A stretch of DNA of 64,000 nt from Oopsacas minuta (taxonomy: Eukaryota; Animalia; Porifera). Shown piece by piece: positions 6,909 to 39,215 of this stretch. The position numbers and the translations under genes were made by a program. The notes below the pieces were generated by a model. It did not search any database and was not told the DNA's origin. It saw nothing but the letters and a program-made list of their open reading frames with translations. Positions within the stretch are counted from its first letter, which is position 1; each line of letters starts with the position of its first letter. The stretch is from assembly GCA_024704765.1 (NCBI GenBank), contig JAKMXF010000122.1:1-64000 (forward strand), read 5' to 3'.

Positions 6909-7748
6909 ATGGACACAAATAATCCTATTGAACCACAAGCTGTTGAGAATAATTTCGAGAGAGTGAGAAGTGAAATTGATTACATAAGGAAGATACAACC
7001 TCTACTGTGTGCTTTTAAGAGAGGAAAAGGAAATGATGAACTTGCCTATCCACCTTGTGTCACAGTTGACAAGATGACAGGATATATTTACATAGCAGAT
7101 TGTTTGAATGACTGTGTTAATGTATTTGACAGTAATTGTGAAGGAAAGATGTGCTGTCCAAGAAGATTAGTTATTTGTAGGAGTAAGGTTGTAATTTCTC
7201 ATGCCAACTGTATACTGAACTATAGCCTTGATGGTGAATATATTTCTAGAATTGGTAAACAGGGACAAGGAGAGTTAGAATTCAAATATCCTTTGGGTAT
7301 AGAAATCAACGAATCTAATGATGATATTTACATTTGTGATTCTAATAACAATCGAGTTCAAATACTCTCACAAGATTTCAAATACAAATCACAATTTGGT
7401 TCATTCGAATACCCTCGTGATGTTAAACTCTCTAAAGATTACATTTATGTGTTAGATGCATCTAATCCTTGTATCCATCTATTTAATCATAACCACATAC
7501 TCCAGAAGAGTGTAATTTCACTAGGATAAGGAAATCAAGTCGTTACTCCCCGATCATTCTTTATTGACAATCCTAACAACATTCTAATTGCTGATTATAA
7601 CTCTAATTCTATTTCTATCTTCAACCCAAAATTCCAATCAATTCACCATATTTCAGTTTCTAAGCATCCAACTTCAGTAACAGTAGACAATCATGATAGA
7701 GTTATAGTAGTGTGTGATCATACTGTAAACTGTCTACAGATATTTTGA
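6909..7748 (+). pseudogene. NHL-repeat beta-propeller gene copy A (premature stop, in-frame 33-bp deletion)
   Basis: The ORF stops at GGA-TAA (7527-7529) where paralogs have GGA-CAA. The frame continues GNQVVTPRSFFIDN...NCLQIF-TGA to 7748. It lacks 11 residues (TAKYIFKFGDS) present in paralogs. Confidence 0.9.
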
Positions 7749-7784
7749 TATAACACTCTGTCTATGTTTGTGTTTGTGACTTTG

Positions 7785-8419
7785 GGTGCGCTGCATTTGC
7801 TCGAAATAATGAGGTTGTCATGTTCGGCGAATTAATTCCGATGCATCATTTGTTTGATTAGTATTTTCCGATGTTGTCCTTGTTCGACTGGTAGAAAGCG
7901 CGGGATTTAGAAAATAGTACGGGATCATCATGGGATATTTACTAGGTTAGTTGGCAAAAGGTTGTATGAAGAGGGAATCGGGGATATTTATGCAAACTAT
8001 ATGGCGATGAATGTTTTGTTCTGATTGCTGTTTACTGTTCTGGGATAGCAGGTATTGTATTTATAGGATGGACAATGGAATCACAGTGATTTAACTGTTG
8101 TTACTTCTGGTAAAACTGACTGTAAGTGACTCTGTGTTTTATATTTGAGAAATTTGGACCAGGGACATTTTTGCTTTTAAGCTATTTTGAAGTGTCTTCT
8201 TTGTTTTATAGAAAATGTAGAAGATGACAATAATGTTGCAAAATACGGATATTAAAGGGTAGAAAAAGGTAGAAGGTTTGCAAAAATGGTAGTAGAAAGC
8301 GTGAGATTTAATAGTACGAATCGAACAAATGACAACATTGGAAATGATTAATTGAACATTTTACAACCTCATTATTTCGAACAAATGACAATATGCAGCC
8401 TCGAACAAATGAAAGCGCC
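7785..8419. mobile_element. Non-autonomous DNA element with imperfect TIRs and TCGAACAAATGA subterminal repeats (copy 1)
   Basis: Left GGTGCGCTGCATTTGCTCGAAATAATGAGGTTG is the inverse of right CAACCTCATTATTTCGAACAAATGA...TCGAACAAATGAAAGCGCC. Superfamily not determined. Confidence 0.5.
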
Positions 8420-9150
8420 AAATGAAATTCCAAACTTCATTTTTATCATTTGAATAATTTCTTTGCTTATTTATTCATTACTTCTTCCATTACTATTTGT
8501 TTATTATTGTAATTCTTCAATTCTACTTTTCTTTTCCTTATTTCATCTTCAAAATGTGTTTTTGATGGGTCTTTCCTCAAATTTTACAATTTTATGTATA
8601 CGACCACTGTTACTTAAGTATACAATTGTTCAGGTCCATCTGAGCATTCTGGCGTGTGGAATTTCATAATTACGAGCCTTTGGCTAGTTGCTCCGTGATA
8701 AACTCGCGCAATGCACCTCTATGTATCAATTATTCCCCAAAATGACGCCTCCTTTGAGTATTATACTATAGATATATTAGAACAATATAATAGTGAAAAG
8801 GGCGAGTTATTTCAACAAATGTCAATTGTCTAAGGCTAATTACAATGAAACAACTCTGAGAAAAATGAAAAGGGTGCTTCGAACTAAGGAAAAGAAAGAG
8901 AGTAATAGGGTAGAAATGTTGAGAAATATACCTAAGTCAGAGACTATCCCATATGATGTACATAGTGAGGACTGTATTTGGGATCAATAATCAGAAGATG
9001 TGGTATTTTATGATCATGGAAAATTACTCCTGTTGATTCTGATTGGCTGTAAAGAATCCATGTTTACATATGTAAGTGGAGTGATTTATGAAAATGAAGC
9101 TTTTGAAATAAGTTTACAAATTCGTAAGTTAGCTCCATCAAAGGCAGAAA

Positions 9151-9580
9151 AGAATTACTCCTGATGGAAATTGTCTCTTTAGTCACTATCCTACATGATT
9201 ACGGGTTCAGACCATTTACAATAGAGAAATTATAGAGTTGTTAATAACGAATATGAAAAATACATATCGAACCCAATGTATCAACTATTGCACCTCACAT
9301 TATGATTTGCTTCCTGAGGAGAATTGTAATACAATAGATTGTGACATATCGGTAGGTATGATGGATCGAGTAGGGTCGTAGGGAACTGACCTAGAACTGT
9401 TTCTAACAGCCCAACTCCTCAAAACCGACATTTTCCTATTAAACATATAGATCGTTGTTGGAACAAATTTTCAGGTTATGGATTCAACGACAGACACAAT
9501 GTGCATCCATAAACTGACAAGAGGTTGTACTACGTTTATATTGAGGCACTTTCAACCAGTTGCAAAAGTAAATACAATGG
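9151..9580 (+). pseudogene. Degenerate OTU-like cysteine protease domain (copy 1)
   Basis: Frameshifted translation RITPDGNCLF-S-LSYMITGSDH...GTDLELFLTAQLLKTDIF...HFQPV contains the OTU DGNC box, the 'EL..AQLL' helix and the C-terminal H(F)xP motif. Confidence 0.7.
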
Positions 9581-11203
9581 AGAGCGTGATAACTGATAGT
9601 TATGTTGAAGAAATCGATACAGAACAATGATATTCAAAGAATGAAAAGAAATAGTTAAGTATGGAGATTGATTAAAGTAGCGAATTACAGCAAAATAATG
9701 TTAGATCTTTTAGATATACGTATACTAGATTATATATACAAGATTAAGTGCTGGTAAAGTAATACTGGTAACTCTATCTCTATCAAACTACTAGAGTGAT
9801 TGTATGCAAGAAAAATACACTATTAACATATATAATATATAATATGACATAAACTTCCTGGGCTAGTATTGGTATAGTACAAATGGCATCTCTCTAACTT
9901 CACTGGTAACATAATTATAACGTGATAAAGTGTCCTCGATGTATTTCGCTGCCAACTTCACACTCATGGCGTTTCAGTGTATATTGATAAGAAAATGTTC
10001 ATGGCTTCGATGTTATTATAATTAAGTATATTTTCCTCTACAAATATCTGTTTATAGCGGTTTTTAACTGTTCGCTAAATCTTTATATGATAGTACCTCA
10101 ATCTTGTGTGACACTATTCGATCCATCCCAGACAACAACATGATTCGATTAGGTGATTTTAGTCAATGAGGTATTGATTAGACCACCCATATACTAGCGT
10201 CTCCCTCTTCATCATGGTAGTAACGTTTTTGCTGGACACAAGGGGTTATGAATTGTTTAATTATTTGCTGCCGGAGAACTTTGATTACCAGTAAGGCTTG
10301 TTCTTGTACAAGTACCATAGTTATTCAATAATAATCATGTAGTAAATGACCATGAGCTACACTACAGCTTAGTCTACTAAAGATAAGCCTGATCACTGAG
10401 TTAATTTTCACTGGACCAGGGATTAGAGGAAGTGGTTATATTTTTGATAGGAAAATCTATTATCGTGGATAATAGGCAGCTAGTATATTGTCACCGAAAA
10501 ATTGTATCATTGGTATGTAAGAATTCACAAAAGCCACTTTTGTGAATATTTTCAGATCGAAGTGACGGACGTAATCATGAATGTGCCCATAGATGTTCAT
10601 TTTTGAGATTGCGCAATAATCTTGAGAGATATCATATATTATAAGTGTATGGGATCCAAAGTACTCCAAATTCTACCAACTTGATTAGCAATCTAAATTT
10701 GAATAGGATTTCCAAAATTCTCATTCTATTTGCAAATTTTCTTCTTTTGATAACAAAGATGAAAAGTTTTTGAGACCATAAATACTAGTTATATACAATT
10801 ATGGCTAATATATAAAAGAATTTATTTAATGACGTAATTGATTTACAAAACTATGGTTGGTGGCGGAATACGGCACTTGTAGGGGAGTACAAATGAATTG
10901 GTGGAGGGACAAAATTGTCCCGAAATAATCTGTTTGGTTTATTTTCCGGGTGGCAGTGTACTAGATGATTACTATCGGTGAAATGCCTGATACGACAAGG
11001 ATGTCATAAGTCCTACCTATTTAATATACCTGCTCTATCTGAATTGAGCAACCAACCATTTTTGAGACATTATGCCACCTGTACACAAAATCTGAAATCT
11101 AACCTTCTATACACCACACATGTATACACATCTCCTGTTACTATTGTATTCTCCAATCTGCGCTAATTTAAGCTATTCTACCTCTTCTATCCATTTAGCA
11201 ACA

Positions 11204-12055
11204 ATGGCCACAGCTATTACTATAGAAACGGAGAGAGGGAAAACTGGAATTGATTACACAAGCAAGATACAACCTCTGGTGTGTTCTACTAAGAGAGGAG
11301 ATGGGAATGGTGAACTTAACTGTTCATTTTGTATTACAGTTGACAAGATGACTGGAAATATTTATTTAACGGATTGTCCCAAAAACTGTGTTAAAGTATT
11401 TGACAGTACTGCTAAGTATATTTTCGAATTTGGTGACAGTAATGGTGAAGGTAAGATGTCGTATCCAAGAAGTTTAGCTATTTGTAGGAGTAGGATTCTA
11501 ATTACTCATCACCACGGTATACTGAATTATAATCTTGATGGTGAATTTATTTCTAGAATTGGTATGCATGGAAACGGAGAGTTAGAATTCAACTGTCCTT
11601 GGGGTATAGCAATCAATGAATCTAGTGACGATATTTACATTTGTGATTATGTTAACGATCGAATTCAAATACTCTTAAAAGATTTCCAATTCAAATCACA
11701 AATTGGTTCATTCAACCACCCTTATGATGTTAAACTATCTCAAGAATTCATTTATGTGTTAAATAACTCTAATCCTTGTATCCATCTATTCAATCATAAC
11801 CACATACTCTTGAAGAGTGTAATTTCACGAGGACAAGGAAATCAGGTCATTAATCCATACTCATTCTATATTGACAATTCTAACTACATTCTAATTTCTG
11901 ATTATGGCTCTAATTCTATTTCTATCTTCAATCCTGTATTCCAATCATTTCACAATATTCCAGTATTCAAGAATCCAATAGCAATAACAGTAGACAATCA
12001 TGATAGAGTTATAGTAGTGAGTTGTCATACTGGTAACTGTTTACAGATATTTTGA
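11204..12055 (+). CDS. NHL-repeat beta-propeller protein copy B (283 aa, intact)
   Basis: Six NHL blades (x-P-x-G/D...I-Y-I-x-D..N.R/C-V/I-Q/K-I/V-F/L). The start is set at ATG 11204 (MATAITI), homologous to the other copies, rather than the ORF-track ATG at 11120. No RING/B-box/coiled-coil in the ORF. Confidence 0.9.
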   Translation: MATAITIETERGKTGIDYTSKIQPLVCSTKRGDGNGELNCSFCITVDKMTGNIYLTDCPKNCVKVFDSTAKYIFEFGDSNGEGKMSYPRSLAICRSRILITHHHGILNYNLDGEFISRIGMHGNGELEFNCPWGIAINESSDDIYICDYVNDRIQILLKDFQFKSQIGSFNHPYDVKLSQEFIYVLNNSNPCIHLFNHNHILLKSVISRGQGNQVINPYSFYIDNSNYILISDYGSNSISIFNPVFQSFHNIPVFKNPIAITVDNHDRVIVVSCHTGNCLQIF

Positions 12056-13956: not shown

Positions 13957-16728
13957 CAGTGGCGTCGTGCTCTATGGCCCCCCACAAATTTCATAAGCCG
14001 CCTCCAGATAATTTATTTCTCCCTATCGACTAATGCTTTTCGCTTTTGGTCTTGATGCATACTACTGATAGTTACATCATGTACATAGGCCAACCCTTAA
14101 TTTTTTGTTTTATATATCAATTTAGAACATTATTTGATTCTTTTTTCCTAACTTTCGTATATTGTTATTATCTTTTGTTCGTCAATAAATTTGGATAAAT
14201 ATTTTCACCCTTTGTCACCATGTTCTCCTCCAATTATCCAATCAAGTGATTACTTCTACAGTTGCAGTAGCCACTAATAGTTCTATAGAATCTGAGACTT
14301 CGTTTGTGAATTACTCGTTGTTGAACGATGCTATGGGACAAGAATTTGTAATTCCAGTAGACAGATTACTTCGTGCTGAATACATCAAATATGGACCTAT
14401 ACGACTGAAACTACCAAATAACTCATACCCTCAGACATTATTTCATGGGAAAATGAGGGCTTTTCAGGCAAATTGGTATATTTCAAGACCCTGGTTAGAG
14501 TATAATCAGTATAATGATTCGGTTTTGTGCTTTCCCTGTCGTGTTTCGGTTCTGCAATAAATAAATATGATAGAACATTTGTGGAAGATGGATTTAGACA
14601 GTGGCCACATGCGTTAGAGAAAAATAGAGGATTCGATAAACATTCAAAAAGTGAAAATCATTCCATGTGCATGGAAAAATGGACTAGTTATTTACATGAA
14701 ACTCCGGTAGATGTTCTCATCAGCGAAAATATGAAGAAAGCATTATCTCTTGCGAATAAAGAAAGGCAATCAAGAAAAGATATTGTTTATCTCCTGATTG
14801 ATGTAGTTATTACATTAGCTCAATTGAACTTGCCTTTTCGTGGTCATAATGAAGGAGAAGTGTCTACGAATAAAGTTGTTTTCAAGGGAATTGTCGAATT
14901 TATTTCTCGTTATCACCCACCTTTAATGATTCATTTACAAAAGGGACAAGAAATCCAAAAGGTTATCCCAGTTATTTATCACCTACTTCTCAGAATGAAA
15001 TGATTCAGTATAGTGCCGAAATCTTGAGGGAAGATATTATTGAAAATATTCAAATAGCTCACTTTTTTTTCAATTTGTTTAGATACTACTCCAGATATAG
15101 CTAAGGAAAGATCAGTTATCTATTGTAGTAAGATATGTCAATATAAATGGTGAAATAATTGAATCTCTACTTGACTTGATTGATGTGGCGAATTGTACAG
15201 CTGTAGGGTTAGTGACAACTATTGTTGAAGTTTTCAGTAAGCACGGATAATTGATCGAATCATTACGTGGTCAAGGTTATGGTAGATGTACAACAATGGC
15301 TGGTAGATATAATGGAGTCCAAAATTTAATTAAAGTAAAGAACTCTAAAGCCTATTTTGTACATTGTTATGCGCATCGGTTAAACCTAGTTATTGTTGAT
15401 ACTTGTAAACGCAATGTGATCACTAGAAATTTCTTTGGAATAATGCAAAAGCTGTACGCATTTATTGAGGGTAGCACAAAGAGACATGGGTTATTTATAA
15501 ATATCCAGGAAATGCTATGCCAGTCAAGGTGAAGGGAAGAAAATAGGCACACTTAAATCACTAAGCGATACTAGATGGTCTTCCCGTGCAGAGGCATGCC
15601 AAGTTTTGCTTGAAAATATTAGTGTTCTTCTAAAAGTTCTAGATTCTATTATATACGATGGTAAATATGATTCTGGTATAGCGTCAGATGCTTTCTCTCT
15701 ATCAAAATGTATAGATTTCCAATTTTGTCTATGTTTAGTTACCTTTACAGATATCCTCAAATTGTGTAATATCATTTCAAAATATCTTCAAAATGAAGTT
15801 CTTAACATATCATCAGCAAGTCTACATATTGAATCTTTAATTAGTACATTACAAGGATATACAACTGAAGCATATTTTGATCAATTATTATATTTACAAG
15901 CTGAAAAAATTGCTGAGAATATTGGCGTCACATATAGTGAACCACGTCACAGGAAGGTACCTACAAGGTTGGATGATAGTGAACACCATGTACCAATAGT
16001 GTTAACTGGAAAAGATCGTATGAAAGCGCAATTCTTTAATGATGTGATAGAGTTGATTAAAGAAGCGCTTCAGAGTAGATTCTCACATGAAACCATGCCT
16101 CTTCTCAAATCTAATGAATGCTTAAATCCCCCTAAAGCTGAAAATATACAAATTTAAGAGTACTATCAAGTTATTATATTGGCGACTTCGATGCAGATTT
16201 AATAGAATATGAATACAAACTTCTTGCGAAATCAATTGAATTATCCAATATCGGGAAAATTGGAATTCATAAACTTTATCTTTATATGGTCAAAGAAGGG
16301 ATAGCGAAATTATATCCCAATTTGAACATTCTATATAGATTGATTCTTACACTACCAGTGACATCCTCCGCATGTGAACGTTCTTTTTCAACATTAAAGC
16401 TTATTATGACTCGATTACGTAGCACGATGTGCGAAGACAGGTTAAGTAATTTACTGTTATTGTCCGTTGAATCTAACAGAATGAAATCAATCCCTAAAAC
16501 ATTTGAGAAGATTCACGAGAGATTTTGGAATGCTCCCAGGAAATAGTGTATATCAGTACTGACCTTATGAACACTAATTTACAAATATAATAGTATTTAC
16601 CATAGATTACTTGAAATATAGTTTGAACCAAAGAGAGTACTAGTACTTTTATTATGATATTATAACTCTTTTGGGATGTATTATTGATTCTGTGCCTCCC
16701 CAGAAATTTTCCAAGCAGGACGTCACTG
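13957..16728 (+). mobile_element. hAT transposon (2772 bp), non-functional
   Basis: TIRs CAGTGGCGTCGTGCT / AGCAGGACGTCACTG (13/15). Perfect 8-bp TSD CAGGTAAT (13949-13956, 16729-16736). Internal fragmented transposase. Confidence 0.95.
14246..16546 (+). pseudogene. ZMYM1/DUF4371-type hAT transposase, multiply frameshifted
   Basis: Fragments: WYISRPWLEY...LCFPC (TTF-type Zn finger), LPFRGHNE, LRGQGYG...TMAG, YFVHCYAHRLNL, SLSDTRWSSR, LTLPVTSSACERSFSTLKLIMTRLRSTMCEDRLSNL (hATC dimerization). Confidence 0.92.
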
Positions 16729-17504: not shown

Positions 17505-18000
17505 ATGATTAACATTTGCTTTCACCTGGATGCTGGAGTCATTCTTCAGAGGAGCCATATATACTAGTATTCAGATTACCCTCAAACTCTGAACTTAGAA
17601 AACATTGTCATCACTGAAATGAATATGCTTCAACCTGGTGGCTCACTCTTTGAATTGTTTAATATTTTCCCACCCAACAACTCTACTTAGTCTTTATGGA
17701 ACTATAGGCTTAGAGTGTGAGTTGCAAACATATTTGAAGACTTCTACTGCTAATTTCAATAACCAATAACCAAGAAAGGAATATTACATTACATATGGAT
17801 GAAATACATGTCCAATCAGAGTTTTCTTACACAGGTGGAAGAATACTAACTTGATCAAAATTCTGTCGCTAAAACAGCCCCCACCGATTAACAGCCAGAT
17901 CTTGGTGGCCATCTAGCCTTGAAAGACAGAATGTCAATTTAGCACTTCGAATATTTGACGACTCAACCGCTGTAGCTTTAACAGTCTATGCTTTGTTGCC
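17505..18000 (+). mobile_element. Internally deleted THAP/P-element-superfamily transposase remnant (copy 1)
   Basis: Homologous to 37016-37500. Carries decayed SPGCWS...PVFRLP (THAP), ITLHMDEIHV and LERQNVNLALRIFDDST motifs. Confidence 0.6.
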
Positions 18001-18105
18001 CTAGCATTTCTTATTTCTATATTTATACAATTTTTGTTGTAGTGTAAAATATGATTACCTTCCATCTACCATTTGGTACGACTATTGTCAAAAACAAATG
18101 TATTA

Positions 18106-18251
18106 CAGGACCGTAGGAGCCGGTGCGGCAGGTGCGACGCTCGCCCACCAATAATTCAGAATTTCTATTATTATAACGGTCAGATGTGATCAATGCCGCA
18201 CCAATACAATGTAACTTGCCGTACCAATATTTTTTGCTTCCTACGGCCCTG
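18106..18251. mobile_element. 146-bp MITE (hAT-like TIR), copy 1
   Basis: TIRs CAGGACCGTAGGAGC / GCTTCCTACGGCCCTG, flanked by TATTA on both sides. Matching copy at 37612-37757. Confidence 0.75.
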
Positions 18252-18855
18252 TATTAATCTCAACCTATCATATTCAATGTATGCACTTTAAGTGTAATCC
18301 ATGATCCAAATGAACAGTCAGGCCTTATATTACTTAGGCCACGCTTGATGTAATTTTGATTTTATAACTTCTGTCACTATTATTCGGTTCCAATACTTTT
18401 TTTTTGAAAGATTTACAACCTCCCAGAATTAACCAAATACGGTTGCAAAGGTATTTCCTTCCACGAATATTTCCAAGAAAGCTATATGTCAGTTGAGCTC
18501 CCAAAATATTACTTACGATGATAATACATTTCAGTTTCTTGAATTCGCGGAATACAGGCTATCAAGAAGTTTATTATGTATACTGTTAACGGCCAACACA
18601 AAATTTGCCCTAAAGCGAAGTAACAGTATGTGTATTTAAGAAGTCCGTGACAATACTAAGGTAAATTCTCGTAGTATAAGAACATGTCATATATAATGAT
18701 AGGAAATTGACCGCTGGTATCGATCTCGGTATTGAACTGACAAATTTTGGTTAGATTATCGATGGATGAATTTTGGGCGAACTGCCTCATATGACATGCA
18801 TGTATACACTTCTCCTGCTACTATAGTATCCCACAATCTGAGCTCATTTCAGTTA

Positions 18856-18879
18856 TACTAACTCTTTCTATCAATTTAG
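18856..18879 (+). promoter_or_regulatory. Branch point (TACTAAC) plus pyrimidine tract plus 3' splice acceptor just upstream of the NHL start codon
   Basis: TACTAAC-TCTTTCTATCAATTTAG|CAGCA-ATG. The same motif precedes copy C' (ATG 38366), and all six full copies have TTTAG exactly 5 nt before the ATG. Confidence 0.6.
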
Positions 18880-18884
18880 CAGCA

Positions 18885-19720
18885 ATGGCCACAGCTATTA
18901 CTATTGAAACAGAGAGAGTGAAAACTGGAATCGATTACACAAGCAAGATAAAACCTCTGGTATGTGCTACTAAGAGAGGAGAAGGAAATGATGAACTTTA
19001 CTGTCCACTTGGTGTTACAGTTGAAAAGATGACCGGAGATATTTTTATAACAGATTGTTACAATAACAGTGTTAAAGTATTTAACAGCACTGCTAGTATA
19101 TATTCAAATTTGGTGACAATAATTGTGAAGGAAAGATGTACCATCCAAGAAGCTTAGTTATTTGTAGGAGTAGGATTCTAATTACTCATAACCACGGTAT
19201 ATTGAATTATTCTCTTGATGGTGAATATATTTCTAGAATTGGTAAACAGGGAAAAGGAAAATTAGAATTCAACTGTCCTTGGGGTATAGCAATCAATGAA
19301 TCTAATGATGATATTTATATTTGTGATTATTCTAACAATCGAATTCAAATACTCTCAAAAGATTTCCAATTCAAATCACAATTTGGTTCATTCAAATACC
19401 CTCATGATGTTAAACTATCTAAAGAATACATTTATGTGTTAAATAACTCTAATCCTTGTATCCATCTATTCAATCATAACTACATACTCTTGAAGAGTGT
19501 AATTTCACTAGGACAAGGAAATCAGGTCATTAATCCCCTATCTTTTTTTATTGACAATTCTAACAACATTTTAATTGTTGACTATTCTTCTAATTCTATT
19601 TCTATCTTAAATCCTGAATTGCAATCAATTCACAATATTCCAACAGCAGTAACAGTAGACAATCCTGATAGAGTTATAGTAGTGTGTAATCATACTGTAA
19701 ACTGTCTACAGATATTTTGA
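18885..19720 (+). pseudogene. NHL-repeat gene copy C (1-nt frameshift near 19097, 15-bp in-frame deletion)
   Basis: Split over ORFs 18885-19157 and 19136-19720. GCTAGTAT here vs GCTAAGTAT in paralogs. The last blade reads IPTA vs IPFSEHPTA. Confidence 0.92.
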
Positions 19721-19940: not shown

Positions 19941-19996
19941 TGTGTATATATATTTGTATGTCCACAATTGATTTAAGAGACTGGAGGACCCACAAG

Positions 19997-20576: not shown

Positions 20577-20584
20577 CCCATAGG

Positions 20585-21139: not shown

Positions 21140-22883
21140 TGAAACTAGATAATGCCATAATTGGCTTATTCCATAATCAGCTAATAACGAGTTTCTATAA
21201 TTCTGAGGTTTTTCTCAAAGTCTTAACTGAATTTCCTACGTGTATGACAAATTTCTCAAGTAATGGCCTTTCTCTGAAATGCTCGTTATTTTATAACCTA
21301 TCCTCAGTAAATCCATCAATCTATGAATGGATTGTGTTCTCAGAAAATCTTTAGACACTGCCATTTCATGTAATACTTCCTCTAATAGCAGCCTCGCATA
21401 ATCGCAGGGGAAATTCTTTGAATTTATACATCCTTATTGGTCTTCGGGTTAGCCGATCTCACATATAGAGCTATGATTATATCAATATTTCATAACCATA
21501 AAGTATCTCCATTGGACACTAACTCTTAGTCAATAATTACAAATTACTTAGTTCTTATTACTAGTCAAAATGATCTATTGAATATTTAAAGTATATAGCT
21601 ATACTGGTTGCGCTAACTCTTGTATATTAGGTTACTAAATTTATCATCGCAGAAACCACTTTGCCTATTAACAGTGTTTACTTTATGTTGGTTATTAAAT
21701 TGTATGCAATCAAATAAGAAAGCATGAACCGTTTAGAATGTACACAAGATACACATAAATTCCCCAAGTGACTGCCATTAGTAAACTCGATAAATGGCCG
21801 AGGAAATAAACAATTTTGGTGATCCAGGGTGTCATACTGGGGGCTACAGGAGCATGAAATTGTACTACAGGCTATCGGATAGAGTTCACAAAATATGAAA
21901 ATTAGTATAGGAGGTTCATAGGGGATAAATGTTCGAACCAGCCTTGAAGGAAATACTAACGAAAGTTGCATCCGTATTTCTACAATAGTCGCTCCCATTC
22001 AGTTATAATGGAGCACATAATTGAGGTTAGCATTTATGGGTGGTTTATAAACTCCCACAGGACATAATACACAATTCTGTAGTCAATAATTATCCCTTTT
22101 CAAGAAATTATGGAAATTTGGTCAAAACACTTTACAACACTATGTAAGCAACAAAGAAGCAACAATTCTTAATTAGAGTATACACATATATTTAGTCAAT
22201 ATTAATGAAATAATCGGAACAACATATGAAGACGTGATGACATATTGATTTATAAGTATATTTGCTGAATATTTATTCGAAATAAATACGAAAATTAGAA
22301 ATATTCAAAATATGGAAGTTTTCGATGAGTGAATTTAACTAAGAGTCGTATTTTGAATTTAAGCCTTGCATTCACTAGAGTCATAATACCCTGGTATTAC
22401 CGAGGTATTGAGTTCCAAGAGAGACGATAACCGGGTTTTAGAAGTTGAAGAATAATCAACAACCCTAATTGTGTTATATTACATACTTCGAAGGCCTTTC
22501 AATTGACAAGTTCCAAAGCAATGTACTTCTAGAGCCTGTAGTATTGTATTATTCCATTTCTCTAATCACAACGATATATTTTGCAATTTGGACTGTACTG
22601 TTCGGATTAGCGAGGCTATAATGCACTGACTTTCCCAAAGAATGACATCTGGTCACCCTACTAGCACCCCATGTAACAAGTTCACTGTGCATTATGACAA
22701 AACCCAAATGAGTAACTTTTAAAAAGTTACAAGAAATTGTGAAATAATCGTCCTTTACATTTAACTGTCATACCATTTTCAACAACTATTATCACTAGTA
22801 ATTTTGTCGTATATGACCATGAGCTACATGTATGTCTACTGACTATTTGTATTAATTCATACTCGTATACATATTTAGCGATA

Positions 22884-24924: not shown

Positions 24925-25350
24925 AATGAATTCTCCTGATGGAAATTGTATCTTTAGTCACTATCCTACATGATTACGGGTTCAGACCATTACCATAAAG
25001 AAATTATAGAGTTGTTAATAACGAATATGAAAAATACATATCGAACCCAATGTATCAACTATTGCACCTCACATTATGATTTGCTTCCTGAGGAGAATTG
25101 TAATACAATAGATTATGATATATCGGTAGGTATGATGGATTGAGTAGGGTCGTGGGGAACTGACCTAGAACTGTTTCTAACAGCCCAACTCCTCAAAACC
25201 GACATTTTCCTATTAAACATATAGATCGTTGTTGGAACAAATTTTCAGGTTATGGATTCAACGACAGACACAATGTGCATCCATAAACTGACAAGAGGTT
25301 GTACTACGTTTATATTTGAGGCACTTTCAACCAGTTGCAAAAGTAAATAC
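24925..25350 (+). pseudogene. Degenerate OTU-like protease domain (copy 2)
   Basis: Near-identical duplicate of 9151-9580 (CCTGATGGAAATTGT = PDGNC; GGAACTGACCTAGAACTG = GTDLEL; CACTTTCAACCAGTT = HFQPV). Confidence 0.7.
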
Positions 25351-27398
25351 AATGGAGAGCGTGATAACTGATAGTTATGTTGAAGAAATCGATACAGAAC
25401 AATGATATTCAAAGAATGAAAAGAAATAGTTAAGTATGGAGATTGATTAAAGTAGCGAATTACAGCAAAATAATGTTAGATCTTTTAGATATACGTATAC
25501 TAGATTATATATACAAGATTAAGTGCTGGTAAAGTAATACTGGTAATTCTATCTCTATTAAACTACTAGAGTGATTATAGACAAGAAAAATACACTATTA
25601 TCATATATAATATATAATATGACATAAACTTCCTAGGCTAGTATTGGTATAGTCCAAATGGCATCTCTCTAACTTCACTGGTAACATAATTATAACGTGA
25701 TAAAGTGTCCTCGATGTATTTCGCTGCCAACTTAACACTCATGGCGTTCAGTGTAATATTGATAAGAAAATGTTCATGGATTCGAGGTTGTTATAATTAA
25801 GTGTATTTTCCTCTACAAATATCTGTTTATAGCGTTATTCTACCGTTCGCTAAATCTTTAGATGATAGTACCTCAATCTTGTGTGACATTATTCGATCCA
25901 TCCCAGACAACCACATGATTCGATTAGGTGATTTTAGTCTTTGAGATATTGATTGGACCTCCTATATACTAGCATCTCCCTCCCCATCATGTTAGTAGCG
26001 TTTTTGCTAGACACCTCTTAGAGGTAGCGACCATAGCGGTATATTCTTTGATTATCGACTAAACTTCTTCAAAAAGAAGTCCAAGATTAGTTTCCTATAT
26101 AATCAACCAGGGATGATCTTGTGAACAGTATTCTTGAAGTTTGGCTCCTAAATTTAGTCATAATATGTCTGTTGAATTATTATGAAGGATTTCAGGTCGC
26201 CATACGATATCATACTCGCTTGCGTTCCCAGAAAGAGGGTCATTGTATGAGAGCCGTTTCCCTATTTTAACAATTCATTATTTTGACATATTGAGTGAGA
26301 ATTTTCATAGACCTAATTCAATTTCCCATTCCATCTACATTGAAGCTCGGAATAAAGTTGCCAAACTTTCTTCTAGTTTGCGTCGAGATTGTGAGAAGCA
26401 TTTGACTAATAGCTTTAATGCTCTCAAATCCATGAAGCTCTTCTTCCAATATGCCAAAAAGGGATATTAGACATTTATTGGAGTTCAGAAATGAATTTGT
26501 CCTCATGCATCTGTGATAAACCTAACAGTTTCTGTATACTCATGGCCTTGCTGACGACTCCTTTTATTGACATTATATTTTTACAGTTATTTCATCTTCT
26601 TATTGTTCACACGCTGTAGTTCATTATCTGACCCATCCTGACACATTATGTATTTGATTAATCTATATTATTCAATCTCGGTGATCGTTTGTCCGTTGTC
26701 AAGGAAAGGATTTTTGGGTTGCAATTTTGAAACTCCAGCATAACTATGTATTTATCGTGTTTATCATGAAGTACAAAGAATTCAATGAAACTTCACGAAA
26801 TATATCCAATATGCGGATTCCGATTTTCCCACTTTTGGATTAATCATATGTAAATAAATTGTTATTTTTATGAATATAAAGTAAACAAATTTCAAAATTG
26901 AGGTAGATTCATACTTTCAACTACTATACTGAGGTAATCGAGTATACTGAGTCCGAATATGTTATTGTAAACAATATCAATTGTTGTTGTTTTTCTGTTG
27001 AATACCCCGAGGCGGAATGCCTGAGTTAATCGTGGAGCTACGAGCCAAAGGCTCGTTATTATAGAAAATACAATGTAAGTATTTAGTTTAACACAATCAT
27101 GAAACCAAGTTGTTTGTATATCCTTCAAACACGATCGAGACAGCTTCGATAGTCACTGGCAATATTGCATTACTTTGAGATGGTGTGATATCACGAGCAT
27201 TAAAGGCACTGAAGCTTGTATTGATGAATGCAGTTGCTATTAGTACACCTGAACACATATTGATTTATTCCTCGCACTTTATGGTATTCCAAAATTTCGG
27301 TATAATAACCACCTATTGTTTGCAAGTTATTCTGAAGTAATACCTCGTAGGCATACATTGTATATGAAATTATGGATACAACCTCGATCGGTCTCGAC

Positions 27399-30628: not shown

Positions 30629-31197
30629 GGGCCTTATTAACTAAAATTCTTAAGTCAAATTCTTAGAATTTTGCTTAACTTTAAGTCAAATTCTTAGAAT
30701 AATTCTAAGAATTCGAACAATTCTAAGAAAAATATTTTGTGAGGTAAAGAGGACACTTAACTTATAATTTATTCTACTTTCCTATGAAATGATAATCAAT
30801 ACGCATTTAATAATAAAGAAGATTGTTTATCGCTTAAGACAATATGTTTGATTATCATATCTACATGTTGTAATATCCGCTATTGTGTGGGGCAATTTAT
30901 CTCATTAATGATAAATGAAGTATACAAGTAGAAGGATATTATTTTCTACTATGAGCATATCTTCTCAAAAAGCGATTGAAGTCGAATGAATTGGCATAAA
31001 TTTTATTAATCAATAGCAAGAATCAATCAAGTAGAATTACCCAATTCTAAGAATTTTTCTTAGAATCCGTTAAGTATAGCCAAGTTAAGAATTCTTAACG
31101 AAAACTAAGAATATTTCATGAATTCTTAGAATTATTCTTAGAAATACACTTAGAATTAAGTTAAGAATAATTCTTAGAATTTTTGTTAATAAGGCCC
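30629..31197. mobile_element. PIF/Harbinger-type MITE (569 bp)
   Basis: TIR GGGCCTTATTAAC / GTTAATAAGGCCC with 3-bp TSD CTG. The empty site GAAATGCCTGATACG is present in the paralogous region at ~10980-10994. Many internal TTCTTAGAA/TTCTAAGAA repeats. Confidence 0.88.
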
Positions 31198-31414
31198 CTG
31201 ATAAGACAAGGATGTCATAAGTCCTACCTATTTAATATGCCTGCTCTATCTGAATTGGGCAACCAACCATTTTTGAGACATTATGCCACCTGTACACAAA
31301 ATCTGAAATCTAACCTTCTATACACCACACATGCATACACATCTCCTGTTACTATTGTATTCTCCAATCTGCGCTAATTTAAGCTATTCTACCTCTTCTA
31401 TCCATTTAGCAACA

Positions 31415-32266
31415 ATGGCCACAGCTATTACTATAGAAACGGAGAGAGGGAAAACTGGAATTGATTACACAAGCAAGATACAACCTCTGGTGTGTTCTAC
31501 TAAGAGAGGAAAAGGAAATGATAAACTTGACTGTCCATGTGGTGTTACAGTTGACAAGATGACTGGAAATATTTATATAGCAGATGGTTCCAATAACTGT
31601 GTTAAAGTATTTGACAGTAGTGCTCAGTATACTTTCAAATTTGGTGACAGTAATGGTGAAGGAAAGATGTCCTATCCAAGAAGTTTAGTTATTTGTAGGA
31701 GTAGGATTCTAATTACTCATAACCACGGTATACTGAATTATAGTCTTGATGGTGAATTTATTTCTATAATTGGTATGCATGGAAACGGAGAGTTAGAATT
31801 CAACTGTCCTTGGGGTATAACAATCAATGAATCAAATCATGATATTTACATTTGTGATTCTTTAAACAATAGAATTCAAATACTCTCACAAAATTTCCTA
31901 TTCGAATCACAATTTGGTTCACTCACATTCCCTATTGATGTTAAACTCTCCAAAGAATACATTTATGTGTTAGATATATCTAATCCTTGTATCCATATAT
32001 TCAATCATAACCACATACTCAAGAAGAGTGTAATTTCACAAGGACGAGGAAATCAAGTAATTTATCCCTACTCATTCGTTATTGACAATTCTAACAACAT
32101 TCTGATTGCTGATTATTCTTCTAATTCTGTTTCTATCTTCAATCCTGAATTCCAATCAATTCACCATATTCCAGTCTCTAAGCATCCTAAAGCAGTAACA
32201 GTAGACAATCATGATAGACTTATAGTAGTGTGTATTCATACAGTGAACTGTTTACAGATATTTTGA
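31415..32266 (+). CDS. NHL-repeat beta-propeller protein copy B' (283 aa, intact)
   Basis: Uninterrupted ORF from homologous ATG 31415 (MATAITI) to NCLQIF-TGA. Confidence 0.92.
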   Translation: MATAITIETERGKTGIDYTSKIQPLVCSTKRGKGNDKLDCPCGVTVDKMTGNIYIADGSNNCVKVFDSSAQYTFKFGDSNGEGKMSYPRSLVICRSRILITHNHGILNYSLDGEFISIIGMHGNGELEFNCPWGITINESNHDIYICDSLNNRIQILSQNFLFESQFGSLTFPIDVKLSKEYIYVLDISNPCIHIFNHNHILKKSVISQGRGNQVIYPYSFVIDNSNNILIADYSSNSVSIFNPEFQSIHHIPVSKHPKAVTVDNHDRLIVVCIHTVNCLQIF

Positions 32267-32358
32267 TATACAACTTTATCTATGTATTTGTATTTGTATA
32301 TTTATGTATTTGTATTTCCTAAGTAATACTATTGTGCATAGAATTACCTACCATGGAT

Positions 32359-35165
32359 CAGGGCCGTAGCCAGAGCGTAGTGTTAGGAGGGGCTAAGTAA
32401 ACTTTAGGGGGGGCTTGGATACTTAAGATTTTTATATTAATTTTTGGGGAGGCCAATGAACTAATGAACTACAATTCTATATTAATCTCATAAATTTATA
32501 TAATATCTAAAATAAACGGAGTCTTCTATCCTTCTTCCTTGAAAATTTCAAGAGGAACTTTTCAACATCCATTTTTTTCGTTATCTAGATTCAAACGCAA
32601 GAAACACTAAATTGGAACATCTGATTTCCGACATATTTCTCTGTGGCCTACTAACTCTAGTGAGAACTGAGAACGAAGACTCACACATAGAAGTGCTACA
32701 ACAAAACATTGCTACAGTAGCAAACAAATTATATGTGTTATTAAACGGCTGTCGATACTTGTACAATTCTTCGAGTATATTCGTTTTATCTTTCATGAAT
32801 TCCTTTACTACTGACAATTCTTCAATTGAGGGAAGCGAAATCCCAAGCTCTGATAAAGGGTACAACTTATCAATGTCAAATTCTTCGATCGAATCAACTG
32901 CTTGTAATAACATGTTATTCTCGAAAAATCTCCTCTCGAATTCACGGCTTGTTATATGAATTGTGTCTATGAATAATGATTCTAACGTATCATGTTCTTT
33001 TGTTGTAGATTCGGTAAGAATATAATCGTTATATAAACAGTTAGGTTTTTTGCGTCTAATTGGACGAGACATATCATCATCATGCAGTAGTATACTTTTG
33101 GCCTCGCTAACTATCCCACTAAATGCATCTGGATTTTGAAGCTTATTAATGTTTTAAATACAGAATTGATAATTTCCATGGCGTTTTTTAAGCCTGCATC
33201 ACGGGATTGTAAGATCTTATCTGCTGGTTCTATTGTAAGTAGGAGCTTTTTCATAAATATCAAACAAAAACGGAACTCTAACTTAATTAGTGTGGCCAAC
33301 AAACCAGCACTCTGTACAACTTGCTCTCCACTAAATTCTGTGGAGCATTGGACTGTTCTAAGCAATTCAATAATAGTTTGATAGTTAGAATAAATAGCCT
33401 CAGTGATTTTCAAATGTCCTGACCATCTTTGTTCTAAAAGACGACCAATACGAGTTCCTGTATAAATTGATATAACTTTGACATGATTCAGAAACAAGTG
33501 TAACATTCTACATTGGTCAAAAAATATCTTGAGTTCTGGAACTTCAGATATTAATTTCATAATTACCAAATGAAGTCGATGGTTGAAACAATGAACATAC
33601 GGAACCTTTCGATGTAATTCCTCTTGAATGAGGGTTTGAACACCCCCTTTTCTACCACTCATTACACTAGCGCCATCATAGCACTGTGAAAGTAATCGTT
33701 TAGAATCCAATCCATTATTTCTCAAGATCTCCATTGTTAAATTAGCCATGGTTTTGGCATCTGAAGAGAGAGTTGTTGCTACATTAACTAAAGATTCAAA
33801 AACTTTACCTTTCCTAACATAGCGAATTCCAATTGATACATGTTCTATATTGTTACGATCTCTAGTGCCATCTTCTAGTAAAGTAAACCACGGGACATCA
33901 GCATCTAAAATTTCAAAAATAATTTCTTCCCTAACTACTTCCGACATAATATCTATCACATCATTTTGAATATCTGGAGAAAGGTAATGAGCATTTTTAG
34001 GAATTTGTGTATAAATTTCAGCGAGTTTCGGGTCCTTTGTAAGTGTATATTCAAACAAGTTCCTGAATAATCCATGTTCCGTATTTTCATCAATATCATA
34101 ATTTCCACGCAGAGCTAATTCATTGACAGCTAAAAATTGAACAATTTCAGCAATGGACCGTATGTAATATCTATTTTTTTCAAAAACATTAGCACAAACT
34201 AATGTAGATATTTATAGTTGGGATGATTCGCGAAGCTCTTTTTCACGCCAATTCGCCATTGCAGTAAGATGAACACGAGAATCAGCTTGTTTACAAAGTC
34301 CTTTGCTTTTTTCTATTGCCGATTTCCAATTTTTAAATCCAATGTTTGTGAAGACATTTTCTTTAGTCCCGTGTGAGAGAAATTGACGGCAGGGATAGCA
34401 AAATACAGCATCAAGGGATAGTGAATATTCCAACCAGGGAAATCTAATAAACCAATCTTGTTGAAAACTACGGCCAATAGAATCCTTCAGATAAATCAAT
34501 CCTTTAATTTGTATAATGTTTCTCCTAGAGTAGATATATCTGGTATTTCTTTGTTGATCGGATTATATATTTCAATACTATTCAAGGGATCAGAAAGAGA
34601 GCTATCAAAGGAAATAAAATTATCCATAGTAATATAATCACTAACTAAATTGAATAGAAAATCAAAATTATTAACAATTTGACAGAACTAAAATTAAAAG
34701 AAGAAAGAACAGGAACAAAATTAAAAGAAGAAAGAACAGGAACAAAATTAATTGCATTATAAGAAAATATCAAAGGAGGATTCTTGATCATTAAACAAAA
34801 TCAAGAGACTACGTGTTTCTATGTATGGTGATTATAGCCATGAGGAATGATTTCACAATTCGCACATCAAATGTAATAAACTGGAAGGAATATATGTTGT
34901 GGTCATATAAAAACAGAAATTTAATTTCAATGGTCGCTGTAAGAGCATCCAATGAATTAAGTATATTAACTAGCAATAGGAATTAGATAACTAGAATGTA
35001 TAGTCAATTTGACATATTCACAAACATTTCCTTGATTTAACTAATATTCAAGATCTAAGATAGTAAAGATCAATATAGCTTAGCAAAATTTACGGGGTGG
35101 TTAAATTTGGTAGGGGGGGCTCAAATTTTTCCAGGGGGGGGCTCAGCCCCCTAGCTACGGCCCTG
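32359..35165 (-). mobile_element. hAT transposon (2807 bp), non-functional
   Basis: TIRs CAGGGCCGTAGCCAG / CTAGCTACGGCCCTG (14/15). Perfect 8-bp TSD CCATGGAT. The empty site CTACCATGGATTAC is at ~17101-17114. Confidence 0.96.
32581..34627 (-). pseudogene. ZMYM1/DUF4371-type hAT transposase with 2 frameshifts and 1 in-frame stop
   Basis: MDNFIS.../ GRSFQQDWFIRFPWLEYS...FCYPCRQF; stop at 34212; LALRG; FTLLEDGTRD; SQCYDGASVMSG; YVHCFNHRLHL; EQRWSGH; frameshift near 33125; CESSFSVL (hATC). Confidence 0.93.
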
Positions 35166-35274
35166 CCATGGATTGCTTAAAGTGCATTTTGTAATTCACC
35201 CATAATTGTAACATGTAAAATTGACATTTTCTGAATTGCTGAAATTTTGTATAATCACTTCTCCTATATAGGTA

Positions 35275-36900
35275 CAGTGGCGTAGCCAGCCTTGAGTGAT
35301 TGTCAGGGCACAAGGCAAGATTGGATTTAGACCACACATACAATGTATGCCATAATACGAATTGAAATGATATTAATGAATATACAGTGCAGGTCAAAAA
35401 GAATTATTCAGAATAAATTTACCCCAAATTCTTATCTCTATGACTGATTTAACAATAATGCTTTATTATAGTCAAGTAAATTGTCGCTAGTATTTAGTAG
35501 AACCTCCTCTTGCTTGAATTACGGCTTTACATCTTTGCGGCATACTCTCAATTGGAGTATGGAGCCTGTTAATGTCGATGCTATCTCAAGTGGTTAATAT
35601 GGCATTCCACAACTCTGAGTAGTTGGATGGGCTTTTCTCTTGAATTCTGAGGGAAATGTGATCCCAAAGATTCTCAATCGGATTTAGATCAGGTGACTGA
35701 GCAGACCAATTCATAACCTCTATTTTTTGCTCACCAAACAATTGCTTGGTACCCTTTGACCTATGGCATGGGGCGTTGTCTTGCTGAAAGGTCCATCCAG
35801 AATGTAGAGAATGCTAATCAACGCTTGGGATTAGTGCATTTTCCAATATATCAATGTAGGAATTTGTCTTGAGGTTCCCAGATACTTCCACCATAGTCCT
35901 ACGCCACTCCAGCAAAAGCATCCACAAACCATGATGCCACCTCCACCAAACTTGCAAGTTTTTTGAAGACACCTCTCTGAGATCTCCTCCCCTTTCATCC
36001 TCCTGATGTAGGCTCTCCCGTCATTAGTATACAGAAGGAACCTAGATTCGTCACTGAACACAACTCTTGCCCATTCTTCAGTATTCCAATTCTTGTGCGA
36101 TCTTGCGAAGGAAAGCCGGTCTCTTTTGTGCTTGGTAGTAAGGCGGGGCTTCTTTCGCGGTTTTCGTCCGAACAGTCCAGCCCCTCGTAACCTTCTCTGG
36201 ACTGTTGAAGTGGAAAGTTTTATCGAATATTCTGATAACACTTCAGCTTTGATCTGAGTAGCAGTCTTAAATCGATCCTTTTTGCATTTTCTGACCAATA
36301 AATTGTCTTGCCTTTTGGTTGTGACACGAGGCCTACACGGAATAGCGAAGTCTCTTACCGAGCCAGTTAGCCTGTGTTTCTTAAGGATCTCGGCTACACT
36401 TTTTTGGCTACACCCAACCATTTTAGCTACCTCCCTCTAAGTTTGGCCACTTTCTGAAAGTAGTATCAGGTTGGGTTGATTTTCAATGGAATTCTGGGTT
36501 TCGAAGGCATTGAAAACTCGATGAATACGAACAAATTGGAAAAAAGAATACAAAATAAAATCGGTAAGTTGTGCAAATATAATGAGTGGATTAGCTGTGT
36601 TGGTGTGTTACTTGTCAAAATACATATGGCTGAGTATGGTTTTGCAAGAATTCAACTATCTGGTCAGCGTATACAATTTGACATTTACTATACTGTATAC
36701 ATTCATTTTGAGCAATTCTTTTTGACCGGCACTGTATTATTGAGCGGATCGAAACACAACAAAACGGTTTATTAATAAGTAGAACGCATTTGCTTCAAGT
36801 AGTTAAAAATACACTTTATAAATATTGCCCAGGCACGAAAAAAAGTTGCCGGGTCATGACGGTCAGTTACCGGGCAGGCTCGTGTGTGGCTACGTCACTC
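35275..36900. mobile_element. Small hAT-type MITE (~275 bp) split by the Tc1 insertion
   Basis: Left CAGTGGCGTAGCCA at 35275, right TGGCTACGTCACTC ending at 36900. The unit-1 copy (from 17214) keeps only the left end. Confidence 0.6.
35385..36734 (-). mobile_element. Tc1-family transposon (1350 bp) with inactivated transposase (35487-36510)
   Basis: TIRs CAGTGCAGGTCAAAAAGAATT / AATTCTTTTTGACCGGCACTG with TA TSD. The empty site GAATATATTATTGAGCGG is at ~17320. Motifs VFSDES, FQQDNAPCH, SPDLNPIENLW, ARGGSTKY are interrupted by stops and frameshifts. Confidence 0.96.
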
Positions 36901-37015
36901 TATGTATATATATATATATATAATTTGCCCGAGATTATGTCCCCAGCCTTTCTTTGTTTAAGATTTTACATTTTTCTCTTATTCTGCAATTCTGTTTCAT
37001 CACTGATTAGCCTTG

Positions 37016-37500
37016 ATGCTTAACACTTGCTCTTCACCTGGATGCTGGAGTTATTCTTCAGGGGAGCCATATACACCAGTATTCAGATTACCCTCAGACT
37101 GTGAACTTAGAGAATAATGGTCATCACTGAAATGGATATGCCTCAACCTGATGGCTCACTCTTTGAATTGTTTAATATTTTCCCACCCAACAATTTGACT
37201 TAGTCTTTATGGAACTTTAGGCTTAGAGTGTGAGTTGCAAACATATTTGAAGACTTCTACTGCTAATTTCAATAACCAAGAAAGGAATATTACATTACAT
37301 ATGGATGAAATACATGTCAAATCAGAGTTATCTTACACAGGTGGAAGAATACTAACTTGATCAAAATTCTGTCGCTAAAACAGCCCCCACCGATTAACAG
37401 CCAGATCTTGGTGGCCATCTAGCCTTGAAAGACAGAATGTCAATTTAGCACTTCGAATATTTGACGACTCAACCGCTGTAGCTTTAACAGTCTATGCTTT
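37016..37500 (+). mobile_element. Internally deleted THAP/P-element-superfamily transposase remnant (copy 2)
   Basis: MLNTCSSPGCWSYSSGEPYTPVFRLPSDCELRE*W (THAP start); GLECELQTYLK...ITLHMDEIHVKSELSYTGGRI (first catalytic D region); SLERQNVNLALRIFDDSTAVAL. Confidence 0.7.
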
Positions 37501-37611
37501 GTTGCCCTAGCATTTCTTATTTCTATATTTATACAATTTTTGTTGTAGTGTAAAATATGATTACCTTCCATCTACCATTTGGTACGACTATTGTCAAAAA
37601 CAAATGTATTA

Positions 37612-37757
37612 CAGGACCGTAGGAGCCGGTGCGGCAGGTGCGACGCTCGCCCACCAATAATTCAGAATTTCTATTATTATAACGGTCAGATGTGATCAAT
37701 GCCGCACCAATACAATGTAACTTGCCGTACCAATATTTTTTGCTTCCTACGGCCCTG
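37612..37757. mobile_element. 146-bp MITE, copy 2
   Basis: Identical by eye to 18106-18251. Confidence 0.75.
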
Positions 37758-38365
37758 TATTAATCTCAACCTATCATATTCAATGTATGCACTTTAAGTG
37801 TAATCCATGATCCAAATGAACAATCAGGCCTTATATTACTTAGGCCACGCTTGATGTAATTTTGATTTTATAACTTCTGTCACTATTATTCGGTTCCAAT
37901 ACTTTTTTTTTGAAAGATTTACAACCTCCCAGAATTAACCAAATACGGTTGCAAAGGTATTTCCTTCCACGAATATTTCCAAGAAAGCTATATGTCAGTT
38001 AAACTCCAAAAATATTACCTACGACGATAATACATTTCAGTTTCTTGAATTTGCCGAATACAGGCTATCAAGAAGTTTATTATGTATACTTTTAACGGCC
38101 AACACAAAATTAATCCTAAAGCGAAGTAATAGTAGGTTTATTTAAGAAGTCCTTAACAATATTGAGGTAAATTCTCATAATATAACAAATTGACAGCTGG
38201 TATCGATCTCAGTATTGATCTGACACAATTCGGTTAGATTATCGATGGATGAATTTCGGCGAACAGCCCTTATGACATACAAGCATACACATCTCCTGTT
38301 ACTATAGTATTCGATAATCTGAGCTCATTTCAGATATACTAACTCTTTCTATCAATTTAGCAACA

Positions 38366-39215
38366 ATGGCCACAGCTATTACTATTGAAACGGAGAGAGT
38401 GAAAACTGAAATTGATTACACAAGCAAGATAAAACTCTGGTGTGTTCTAGTAAGAGAGGTAAAGGAAATGATAAACTTTACGGTCCACTTTGTGTTACAG
38501 TTGATGAGATGACTGGAAATATTTATATAGCAGATTATTACAATAACTGTGTTAAAGTATTTGACAGTATTGCTAAGTACATTTTCAAATTCGGCGACAG
38601 TAATGGTGAAGGAAAGATGTCCTATCCAAGAAGTTTAGTTATTTGTAGGAGTAGGGTCTTAATTGCTCATGCCAACTGTATACTGAACTATAACCTTGAT
38701 GGTGAATTTATTTCTAGAATTGGTGAATATGGAAATGGAGAATTAGAATTCAACTATCCTAAGGGTATAGCAATCAATGAATCTAATGATGATATTTACA
38801 TTTGTGATTATTCTAACAATTGAGTTCAAATACTCTCAAAAGATTTCCAATTCAAATCACAATTTGGTTCATTCACATTCCCTATTGATGTTAAACTATC
38901 TAAAGAATACATTTATGTGTTAAATGAATCTAATCCTTGTATCCATCTATTCAATCATAACCACATACTCTTGAAGAGTGGAATTTCACTAGGACAAGGA
39001 AATCAAGTCATGTATCCCAATCATTCTTTATTGACCATTCTAACAACATTCTAATTGCTGAATATTCTTCTATTTCTATCTCTATCATCAATCCTGAATT
39101 CCAATCGATTCACAATATTGCAGTCTCTTATCATCCAAAAGCAGTAACTGTAGATAATCATGATAGAGTTATTGTAGTGTGTGAGCACACTGTAAACTGT
39201 CTACAGATATTTTGA
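38366..39215 (+). pseudogene. NHL-repeat gene copy C' (two 1-nt frameshifts and a CGA>TGA stop)
   Basis: ATG at 38366; frameshift near 38435 (AAAACTCTG vs AAAACCTCTG); TGA at 38821; frameshift near 39019; homologous stop at 39213-39215. Confidence 0.92.

Follow-up and report, generated by a model that had tools for sequence, protein, structure and literature searches.

The window analysed here is the initial 64 kb of contig C122 of the Oopsacas minuta genome, and between positions 6909 and 39215 it holds six alignable, intronless units that encode NHL propellers, all on the plus strand and bounded on one side by an SPT6-like open reading frame (ORF; 25-3450) and on the other by an ORF for a UPF1-like helicase with zinc fingers (44834-48634, minus strand). 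The strands and bottom face of these propellers are under purifying selection, and about 17 residues on or near the top-face loops are under diversifying selection. Taken as a whole, the locus is probably a birth-and-death array of NHL modules that diversify at their top face and form a germline recognition repertoire.

Nucleotide alignment shows that the copies share a conserved ATG start and a conserved TGA end following ...CLQIF. The initial annotation of this DNA had described six full-length paralogs (A, B, C, A', B' and C'), and all six do align end to end, but only B, A' and B' are intact (three of six), while A, C and C' are broken. The copies, and a relic fragment lying among them, are as follows:

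6909-7748, plus strand: copy A, a pseudogene that lacks 33 nt in frame within 7078-7144 and has a CAA to TAA stop at 7527-7529
11204-12055, plus strand: copy B, intact, 283 amino acids (aa), conserved ATG at 11204 (mechanical ORF from 11120)
18886-19720, plus strand: copy C, a pseudogene that has lost 1 nt near 19095 (frameshift) and 15 nt near 19640-19662
22884-23756, plus strand: copy A', intact, 290 aa
29646-29866, plus strand: a relic N-terminal NHL fragment, frameshifted, that aligns to A' residues 19-92
31415-32266, plus strand: copy B', intact, 283 aa, conserved ATG at 31415 (mechanical ORF from 31331)
38366-39215, plus strand: copy C', a pseudogene that has lost 1 nt near 38434 and 1 nt near 39019 and has a TGA at 38821-38823

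No variant of the stop codon in copy A was reported by four sequencing runs, possibly made from the same sample as the assembly. Copy A' served as the reference for the structure model and for homology searches.

An AlphaFold2 model of A', built from an 82-sequence alignment, has a predicted local distance difference test score (pLDDT) of 90.4 and 24 strands arranged in six four-stranded blades, with an N-terminal strand closing blade 6. Its best matches in the PDB are all NHL domains, namely those of Thin, TRIM71, LIN-41, TRIM2/3, Brat, Mei-P26 and NHL-2 (template modelling (TM) scores 0.72-0.86), with scores of 0.82-0.86 for those of Thin, TRIM71/LIN-41, TRIM2 and Brat. In Brat, the beta-b/beta-c and beta-d/beta-a loops define the top surface, which binds RNA (PMC4015489). 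The residues flanking each blade's proline open strand a in the A' model, and those following each blade's aspartate come directly after strand b; by this placement and the Brat loop definition, both sets of positions belong to the top face, as the initial annotation had proposed (PMC4015489). The loop motifs it listed, such as AYPP/NCSF/YCPL/EWPR/DCPC/YGPL, are the actual residues of the copies.

Variation is unevenly spread over the conserved scaffold. Mean column entropy is 0.99-1.17 bits in the top-face loops, about twice that of the strands (0.55) and bottom loops (0.34-0.49), and 14 of the 15 columns that reach 2 bits are inside a top loop or no more than two residues away from one. A clade of 20 intact members, at least 70% identical, was collected genome-wide, and all 20 retain the open frame, start codon and stop position. 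Pairwise estimates by the Nei-Gojobori method (NG86) were limited to the 17 paralogues outside the window, so that the positional rule drawn from the window copies was tested on data that did not lie behind it. Across the 30 codons defined by this rule (P-2, P-1 and P+1; D+1 to D+3) the ratio of nonsynonymous to synonymous substitution rates (dN/dS, or omega) is 2.10 (bootstrap 95% confidence interval (CI) 1.32-3.60), and in the remaining 240 codons it is 0.60. By structural class, dN/dS is 1.20 for all top loops, 0.36 for bottom loops and 0.70 for strands, while omega overall is 0.75. Since dS is alike in every site class (0.16-0.21), the excess is not due to a mutational hot spot.

The site-model check that had been suggested for these loops was run as a comparison of models M2a and M1a, using our own implementation of a codon model (GY94 with F3x4) on a fixed maximum-likelihood topology. 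For the whole gene, M2a was significantly favoured (likelihood-ratio test (LRT) statistic 200.7), with 7% of sites at an omega of 5.5, and the rapid diversification claimed for the loop positions is borne out by both this and the pairwise result. Because recombination inflates the LRTs of site models, the gene was also split into three segments of 90 codons, for each of which a separate tree was used, and the test then gave LRTs of 42.9, 62.8 and 59.8; the omega of the selected class under M2a ranged from 3.9 to 7.9. Seventeen sites were selected at a posterior above 0.9: 11 of them are in top loops (hypergeometric p = 0.0015), none is in a bottom loop, and five are among the opening or closing residues of strand a or b. 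The 30 rule-defined positions include 11 of the 17 (p = 4e-8). The same 17 sites are hypervariable in 55 relatives that have a longer form of the protein (see below), at 1.58 versus 0.56 bits (p = 3e-6).

The composition of the selected sites bears on the nature of the ligand. Tyrosine is enriched 3.7-fold, tryptophan is exclusive to these sites, and asparagine, serine, threonine and cysteine are also enriched. A composition of this Tyr/Trp/Asn/Ser type is typical of protein-binding paratopes. Lysine and arginine show little enrichment at the variable sites (1.15-fold and 1.5-fold), and the net charge of the top loops, a crude residue count and not an electrostatic surface, lies between -9 and +5 and is -2.9 on average. 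These values weigh on an alternative in which the proteins are diversified, sequence-specific binders of viral, transposon or endogenous messenger RNAs that function as regulators or as RNA decoys. The nearest solved structures indeed belong to RNA-binding TRIM-NHL domains, some with RNA on the top face (PMC4015489), this is also the face that carries the selected sites, and aromatic residues, frequent at those sites, also contact RNA. The top surface of RNA-binding TRIM-NHL domains is, however, electropositive (PMC4015489), and the contrast with the non-basic top loops of the array proteins, whose variable sites show scarcely any enrichment of lysine or arginine, therefore makes a weak case against Brat-like RNA recognition as a common function. 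The alternative is unlikely, and RNA, which had been put forward as a possible ligand, is not favoured. The conservation of the bottom loops, in turn, suggests a partner shared by the family.

The layout of the array had been labelled as A-B-C followed by A'-B'-C', which would imply a tidy duplication; the identity between copies is instead mosaic. Tracts that are 99-100% identical adjoin tracts of 73-90% identity, in the coding sequences as well as the flanks. Two intergenic tracts and the transposon remnants that lie between the genes are listed here:

9401-9699, no strand: intergenic tract that matches 25175-25474 at 100% identity, the sign of a recent duplication or conversion event linking the array halves
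14527-16157, plus strand: hAT/DUF4371-like transposase remnants between B and C, of which only the first ORF (14527-15003) matches DUF4371, weakly and below threshold
17879-18478, no strand: intergenic tract 99-100% identical to 37385-37984 (next best genome match 91%)
32581-34058, minus strand: DUF4371/hAT-like transposase remnants between B' and C'
35393-36692, minus strand: Tc1-like transposon relic (ORF 35831-36421) upstream of C', found only in the second array half

A third pair of near-identical tracts joins 10986-11274 with 31197-31485, and such pairs are 99-100% identical over 300-600 bp. The nearest paralogue shifts along each gene; the 5' third of copy A, for example, most resembles a gene of contig C58 (91-96%), and its middle part is 98-99% identical to A'. 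Homology between B and B' ends directly after the stop codon. Trees of separate segments conflict, about 34% of the pairs of informative sites show all four gametes, and a permutation test of homoplasy, similar to the pairwise homoplasy index (PHI), gives p = 0.0005 for all sites and p = 0.048 for third positions only. Mosaic identity, conflicting trees and the PHI-like test together lead to the conclusion that the paralogues, besides undergoing point substitution, have their segments shuffled by gene conversion or unequal recombination. A simple recent segmental duplication followed by fast divergence of the coding sequences in place was rejected, given that the flanks are mosaic too, the nearest paralogue changes along the genes and the homology of B and B' stops at the stop codon.

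Relics of Tc1, mariner and hAT-like elements occur between the array genes. The Tc1-like relic has no counterpart at the matching place upstream of C, and was therefore inserted after the array halves separated. A reading of the identical intergenic tracts as plain transposon copies was partly rejected: the tracts include repeat fragments that also occur elsewhere, but the pairs at 9401-9699 and 17879-18478 are, as composites, unique to the window. Nor are the NHL genes the cargo of a mobile element: non-partner copies cease to be homologous some 90 nt upstream of the ATG and some 40 nt downstream of the stop, and no terminal repeats occur there. One integrase-fused protein (P0017) looks like an annotation read-through.

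Turnover is evident in the clade at large, where 20 of 34 members are intact. The share of broken copies, 14 of 34 in the clade and three of six in the window, is what could be expected of a decaying family under relaxed constraint, its tandem copies lying in a transposon-rich region and its loop variation reflecting neutral drift of unconstrained surface loops. The transposon relics between the genes, the high overall omega of 0.75 and the lack of transcript evidence for the intact copies (only DNA-like runs were found) also suit that explanation, but neutral drift cannot yield an omega significantly above 1, as seen both at the rule-defined sites (2.1, CI 1.32-3.60) and in the M2a class (3.9-7.9). 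The bottom loops, equally exposed, have an omega of 0.36, 20 genes have kept their open frames, start codon and stop position, and the same sites vary in the separate set of long-form genes, all of which makes decay alone an improbable account.

The genome searched comprises 61.46 Mb in 365 contigs. With A' as query there were 898 first-look candidates, and each of the 135 scored had E < 1e-50; with the Pfam NHL model there were 1549, and all 150 scored passed the cut-off. A genome-wide count of the family had been proposed in the initial annotation, and these figures reveal a large, lineage-specific family organized in tandem arrays, as befits a repertoire. The named close relatives of the NHL proteins in the window are all from O. 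minuta.

Pfam searches of the window copies returned NHL repeats only, plus the related six-bladed propeller family DUF5128; all six copies match PF01436 (NHL) with 46-75 bits against a cut-off of 20. A RING cysteine pattern was absent from the six frames of the window, as was any Pfam RING match, and no B-box cysteine pattern was seen in any frame; the B-box family PF00643 has 21 matches genome-wide and none on contig C122. A hidden upstream TRIM exon was rejected on these results. The absence of the N-terminal TRIM modules, already remarked from the ORFs, thus holds, and for the coiled coil it results from deletion. Related proteins of 409 aa in the same genome (e.g., P0021 and P0030) carry an N-terminal helical region of about 125 residues. 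Residues 1-14 of A' align to residues 1-14 of this long form, and residues 9-290 to residues 126-409, while at the DNA level about 350 nt are missing from A' between the two aligned blocks. This mapping of the deletion in protein and DNA identifies the window clade as coiled-coil/NHL genes that have lost the coiled coil in frame (about 117 codons).

Other clades, about 57% identical, also lack the coiled coil and have a different junction, MATANTLERIFSVDYKSK, so that the coiled coil was lost more than once, or long ago. Proteins with this N-terminus are about 282 aa long and are encoded on contigs C336, C339, C48, C177, C317 and C148. The open frame is shorter than 350 codons in about 100 of 136 genome matches to A', and the bare propeller is therefore common genome-wide and not peculiar to the array. 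A search of a representative set returned mainly giant multi-NHL proteins, which say little about architecture. A European Nucleotide Archive (ENA) assembly, ERZ25766962, which is probably from another glass sponge and is represented here by a contig of 677,882 bases, has hundreds of coiled-coil/NHL genes (409-412 aa, about 62% identical to A') in tandem arrays adjoining a Mutator-like element (MULE) transposase. Proteins of 275-299 aa in that assembly were considered as equivalents of the window clade and rejected, as they start at an internal methionine of the long form and do not have the clade's junction. The array proteins have no signal peptide and are presumably cytoplasmic, and the N-terminal 20 or so residues of the intact ones are disordered.

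These observations can be brought together in a single scheme. The array is best seen as a birth-and-death tandem array of an intronless gene family specific to the O. minuta lineage, in which intact genes encode a six-bladed NHL beta-propeller alone (283-290 aa) that is derived from the 409-aa coiled-coil/NHL form. The top-face loops diversify by selection, and paralogues exchange segments by gene conversion or recombination. A constant frame combined with a partner-binding face that evolves faster than silent sites is usual for inherited recognition repertoires. The proteins may then serve as binding modules of such a germline-encoded repertoire, with a variable top face that grips diverse and changing ligands, more likely protein or another non-nucleic-acid ligand than RNA, and the constant bottom or side may dock a common partner; alternatively, they may compete with their coiled-coil/NHL paralogues. 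The evolutionary part of this scheme is supported by the results above, and the functional part, a recognition repertoire, is offered as a hypothesis.

Several points weigh against it. The bare propeller has no evident effector, and ligand, partner and phenotype are all putative. Half of the window copies are dead, and this particular array may be decaying. In the protein index, the array proteins are present only on the genome contig. In the four sequencing runs that contain the locus, coverage extends over intergenic DNA as well as genes, as expected of DNA contigs; these are the only runs found, none of them an RNA run, and expression of the intact copies is putative. Peaks in run depth over the coding sequences were considered as a sign of expression and rejected, as they reflect collapsed paralogue k-mers. 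The assignment of residues to the top face follows the DSSP topology of a predicted model rather than coordinates. Of the 17 selected sites, five are at strand edges and one (site 210) lies elsewhere in the structure. The codon model was self-written with fixed topologies, and is neither PAML nor HyPhy; the inflation of LRTs by recombination is mitigated by the segment trees and the tree-free pairwise test, not removed; and some of the 'paralogues' on small contigs could be alternative haplotypes.

A cytoplasmic self/non-self system governing fusion incompatibility, like the fungal HNWD genes het-d and het-e, would suit an animal described as syncytial (PMC10280926), proteins without a signal peptide, and selection at a few residues per repeat combined with exchange within the family as in Podospora WD repeats (PMC1805685), but it is improbable as well, since the genes carry no death or effector domain, number in the hundreds rather than being a few highly polymorphic loci, and are linked to such systems by pure analogy. 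A broader proposal builds on the preferred birth-and-death repertoire and is put forward tentatively, as something possible and rather less than probable: glass sponges might use the NHL propeller as an intracellular, germline, hypervariable repertoire of hundreds of genes that polices the syncytial cytoplasm against viruses, mobile elements or, after fusion, foreign conspecific cytoplasm. The stand-alone members would be free sensors, or decoys for the coiled-coil forms, and the whole would be an animal counterpart of the fungal WD40 het/NWD genes that diversifies by top-face selection and gene conversion.

Outside the array, the window has the following genes:

25-3450, plus strand: SPT6-like ORF with YqgF, HHH, S1 and tandem SH2 domains, an uninterrupted 1141-aa frame from the contig edge
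44834-48634, minus strand: helicase ORF, a single frame of 1266 aa with CCCH and C2H2 zinc fingers and UPF1-like AAA_11/AAA_12 domains, adjoining the NHL array
62399-63301, minus strand: distant NHL propeller ORF of 300 aa, only 32% identical to the array copies

The last of these belongs to a different NHL subfamily and adjoins a sodium:solute symporter gene (58906-60969, minus strand). The SPT6-like ORF is intronless, as its neighbours are, which is consistent with the many single-exon genes reported in the related glass sponge Aphrocallistes vastus (PMC10282587). Within the 45 nt before each ATG (6864-6908, 11159-11203, 18841-18885, 22839-22883, 31370-31414 and 38321-38365), a pyrimidine run ending in TTTAG, 5 nt upstream of the ATG, is kept in all six copies and in 20 of 20 intact clade members, with TACTAAC ahead of it in many copies. 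The signal looks like a branch point and 3' splice acceptor, and may mark an intron in the 5' untranslated region or a spliced-leader trans-splice site; trans-splicing has been reported for A. vastus (PMC10282587).

Diversified recognition scaffolds known in animals include leucine-rich repeats (LRR), immunoglobulin (Ig) domains, fibrinogen-like domains, B30.2 and few others. NHL genes are not mentioned in the genome papers of O. minuta and A. vastus, and a diversified NHL repertoire was not reported in anything that full-text literature searches returned. If the proposed repertoire is real, the NHL propeller would be an additional animal recognition scaffold, present in hundreds of copies in one of the earliest-branching animal lineages, and would offer a way into innate recognition in a syncytial animal. 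B, A' and B' each encode a small protein of one domain that appears stable and should be easily expressed for ligand screens; a fixed frame with about 17 variable positions may also be of interest for binder engineering.

Among known systems, the nearest in sequence are the 409-aa coiled-coil/NHL paralogues of the same genome and of ERZ25766962, which are 62-64% identical over the propeller, begin with the same MATANP..., are likewise intronless and in tandem arrays, and vary at identical positions, but keep the N-terminal helical region of about 117 residues that the window clade has lost. Teleost finTRIM genes and the B30.2 domain of primate TRIM5 present a parallel, being derived from TRIM proteins, tandemly expanded and positively selected in the loops of a C-terminal recognition domain, as in the array; that domain is B30.2/SPRY rather than NHL, and these proteins still have RING, B-box and coiled coil. 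The TRIM-NHL proteins (Brat, LIN-41/TRIM71, TRIM2/3, Thin/TRIM32, Mei-P26 and NHL-2) share the six-bladed propeller at TM 0.82-0.86 and 16-27% identity, and their ligand-binding top face, made of the beta-b/beta-c and beta-d/beta-a loops (PMC4015489), is the face that varies in the array proteins. Unlike them, the array proteins have no RING, B-box or coiled coil, their genes are intronless and number in the hundreds compared with 3-5 per genome, and the top face is hypervariable and, by residue count, not basic. The closest functional analogue, by analogy only, would be the HNWD/NWD WD40 genes of Podospora anserina (het-d, het-e), in which the interaction surface is positively selected and repeats are exchanged between genes (PMC1805685). 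Both have an intracellular beta-propeller scaffold, few selected positions per blade and exchange between family members. The Podospora proteins, however, combine WD40 repeats of varying number with HET and NACHT effector domains, whereas those of the array are stand-alone NHL propellers with a fixed six blades, and their diversity lies between whole paralogous genes.

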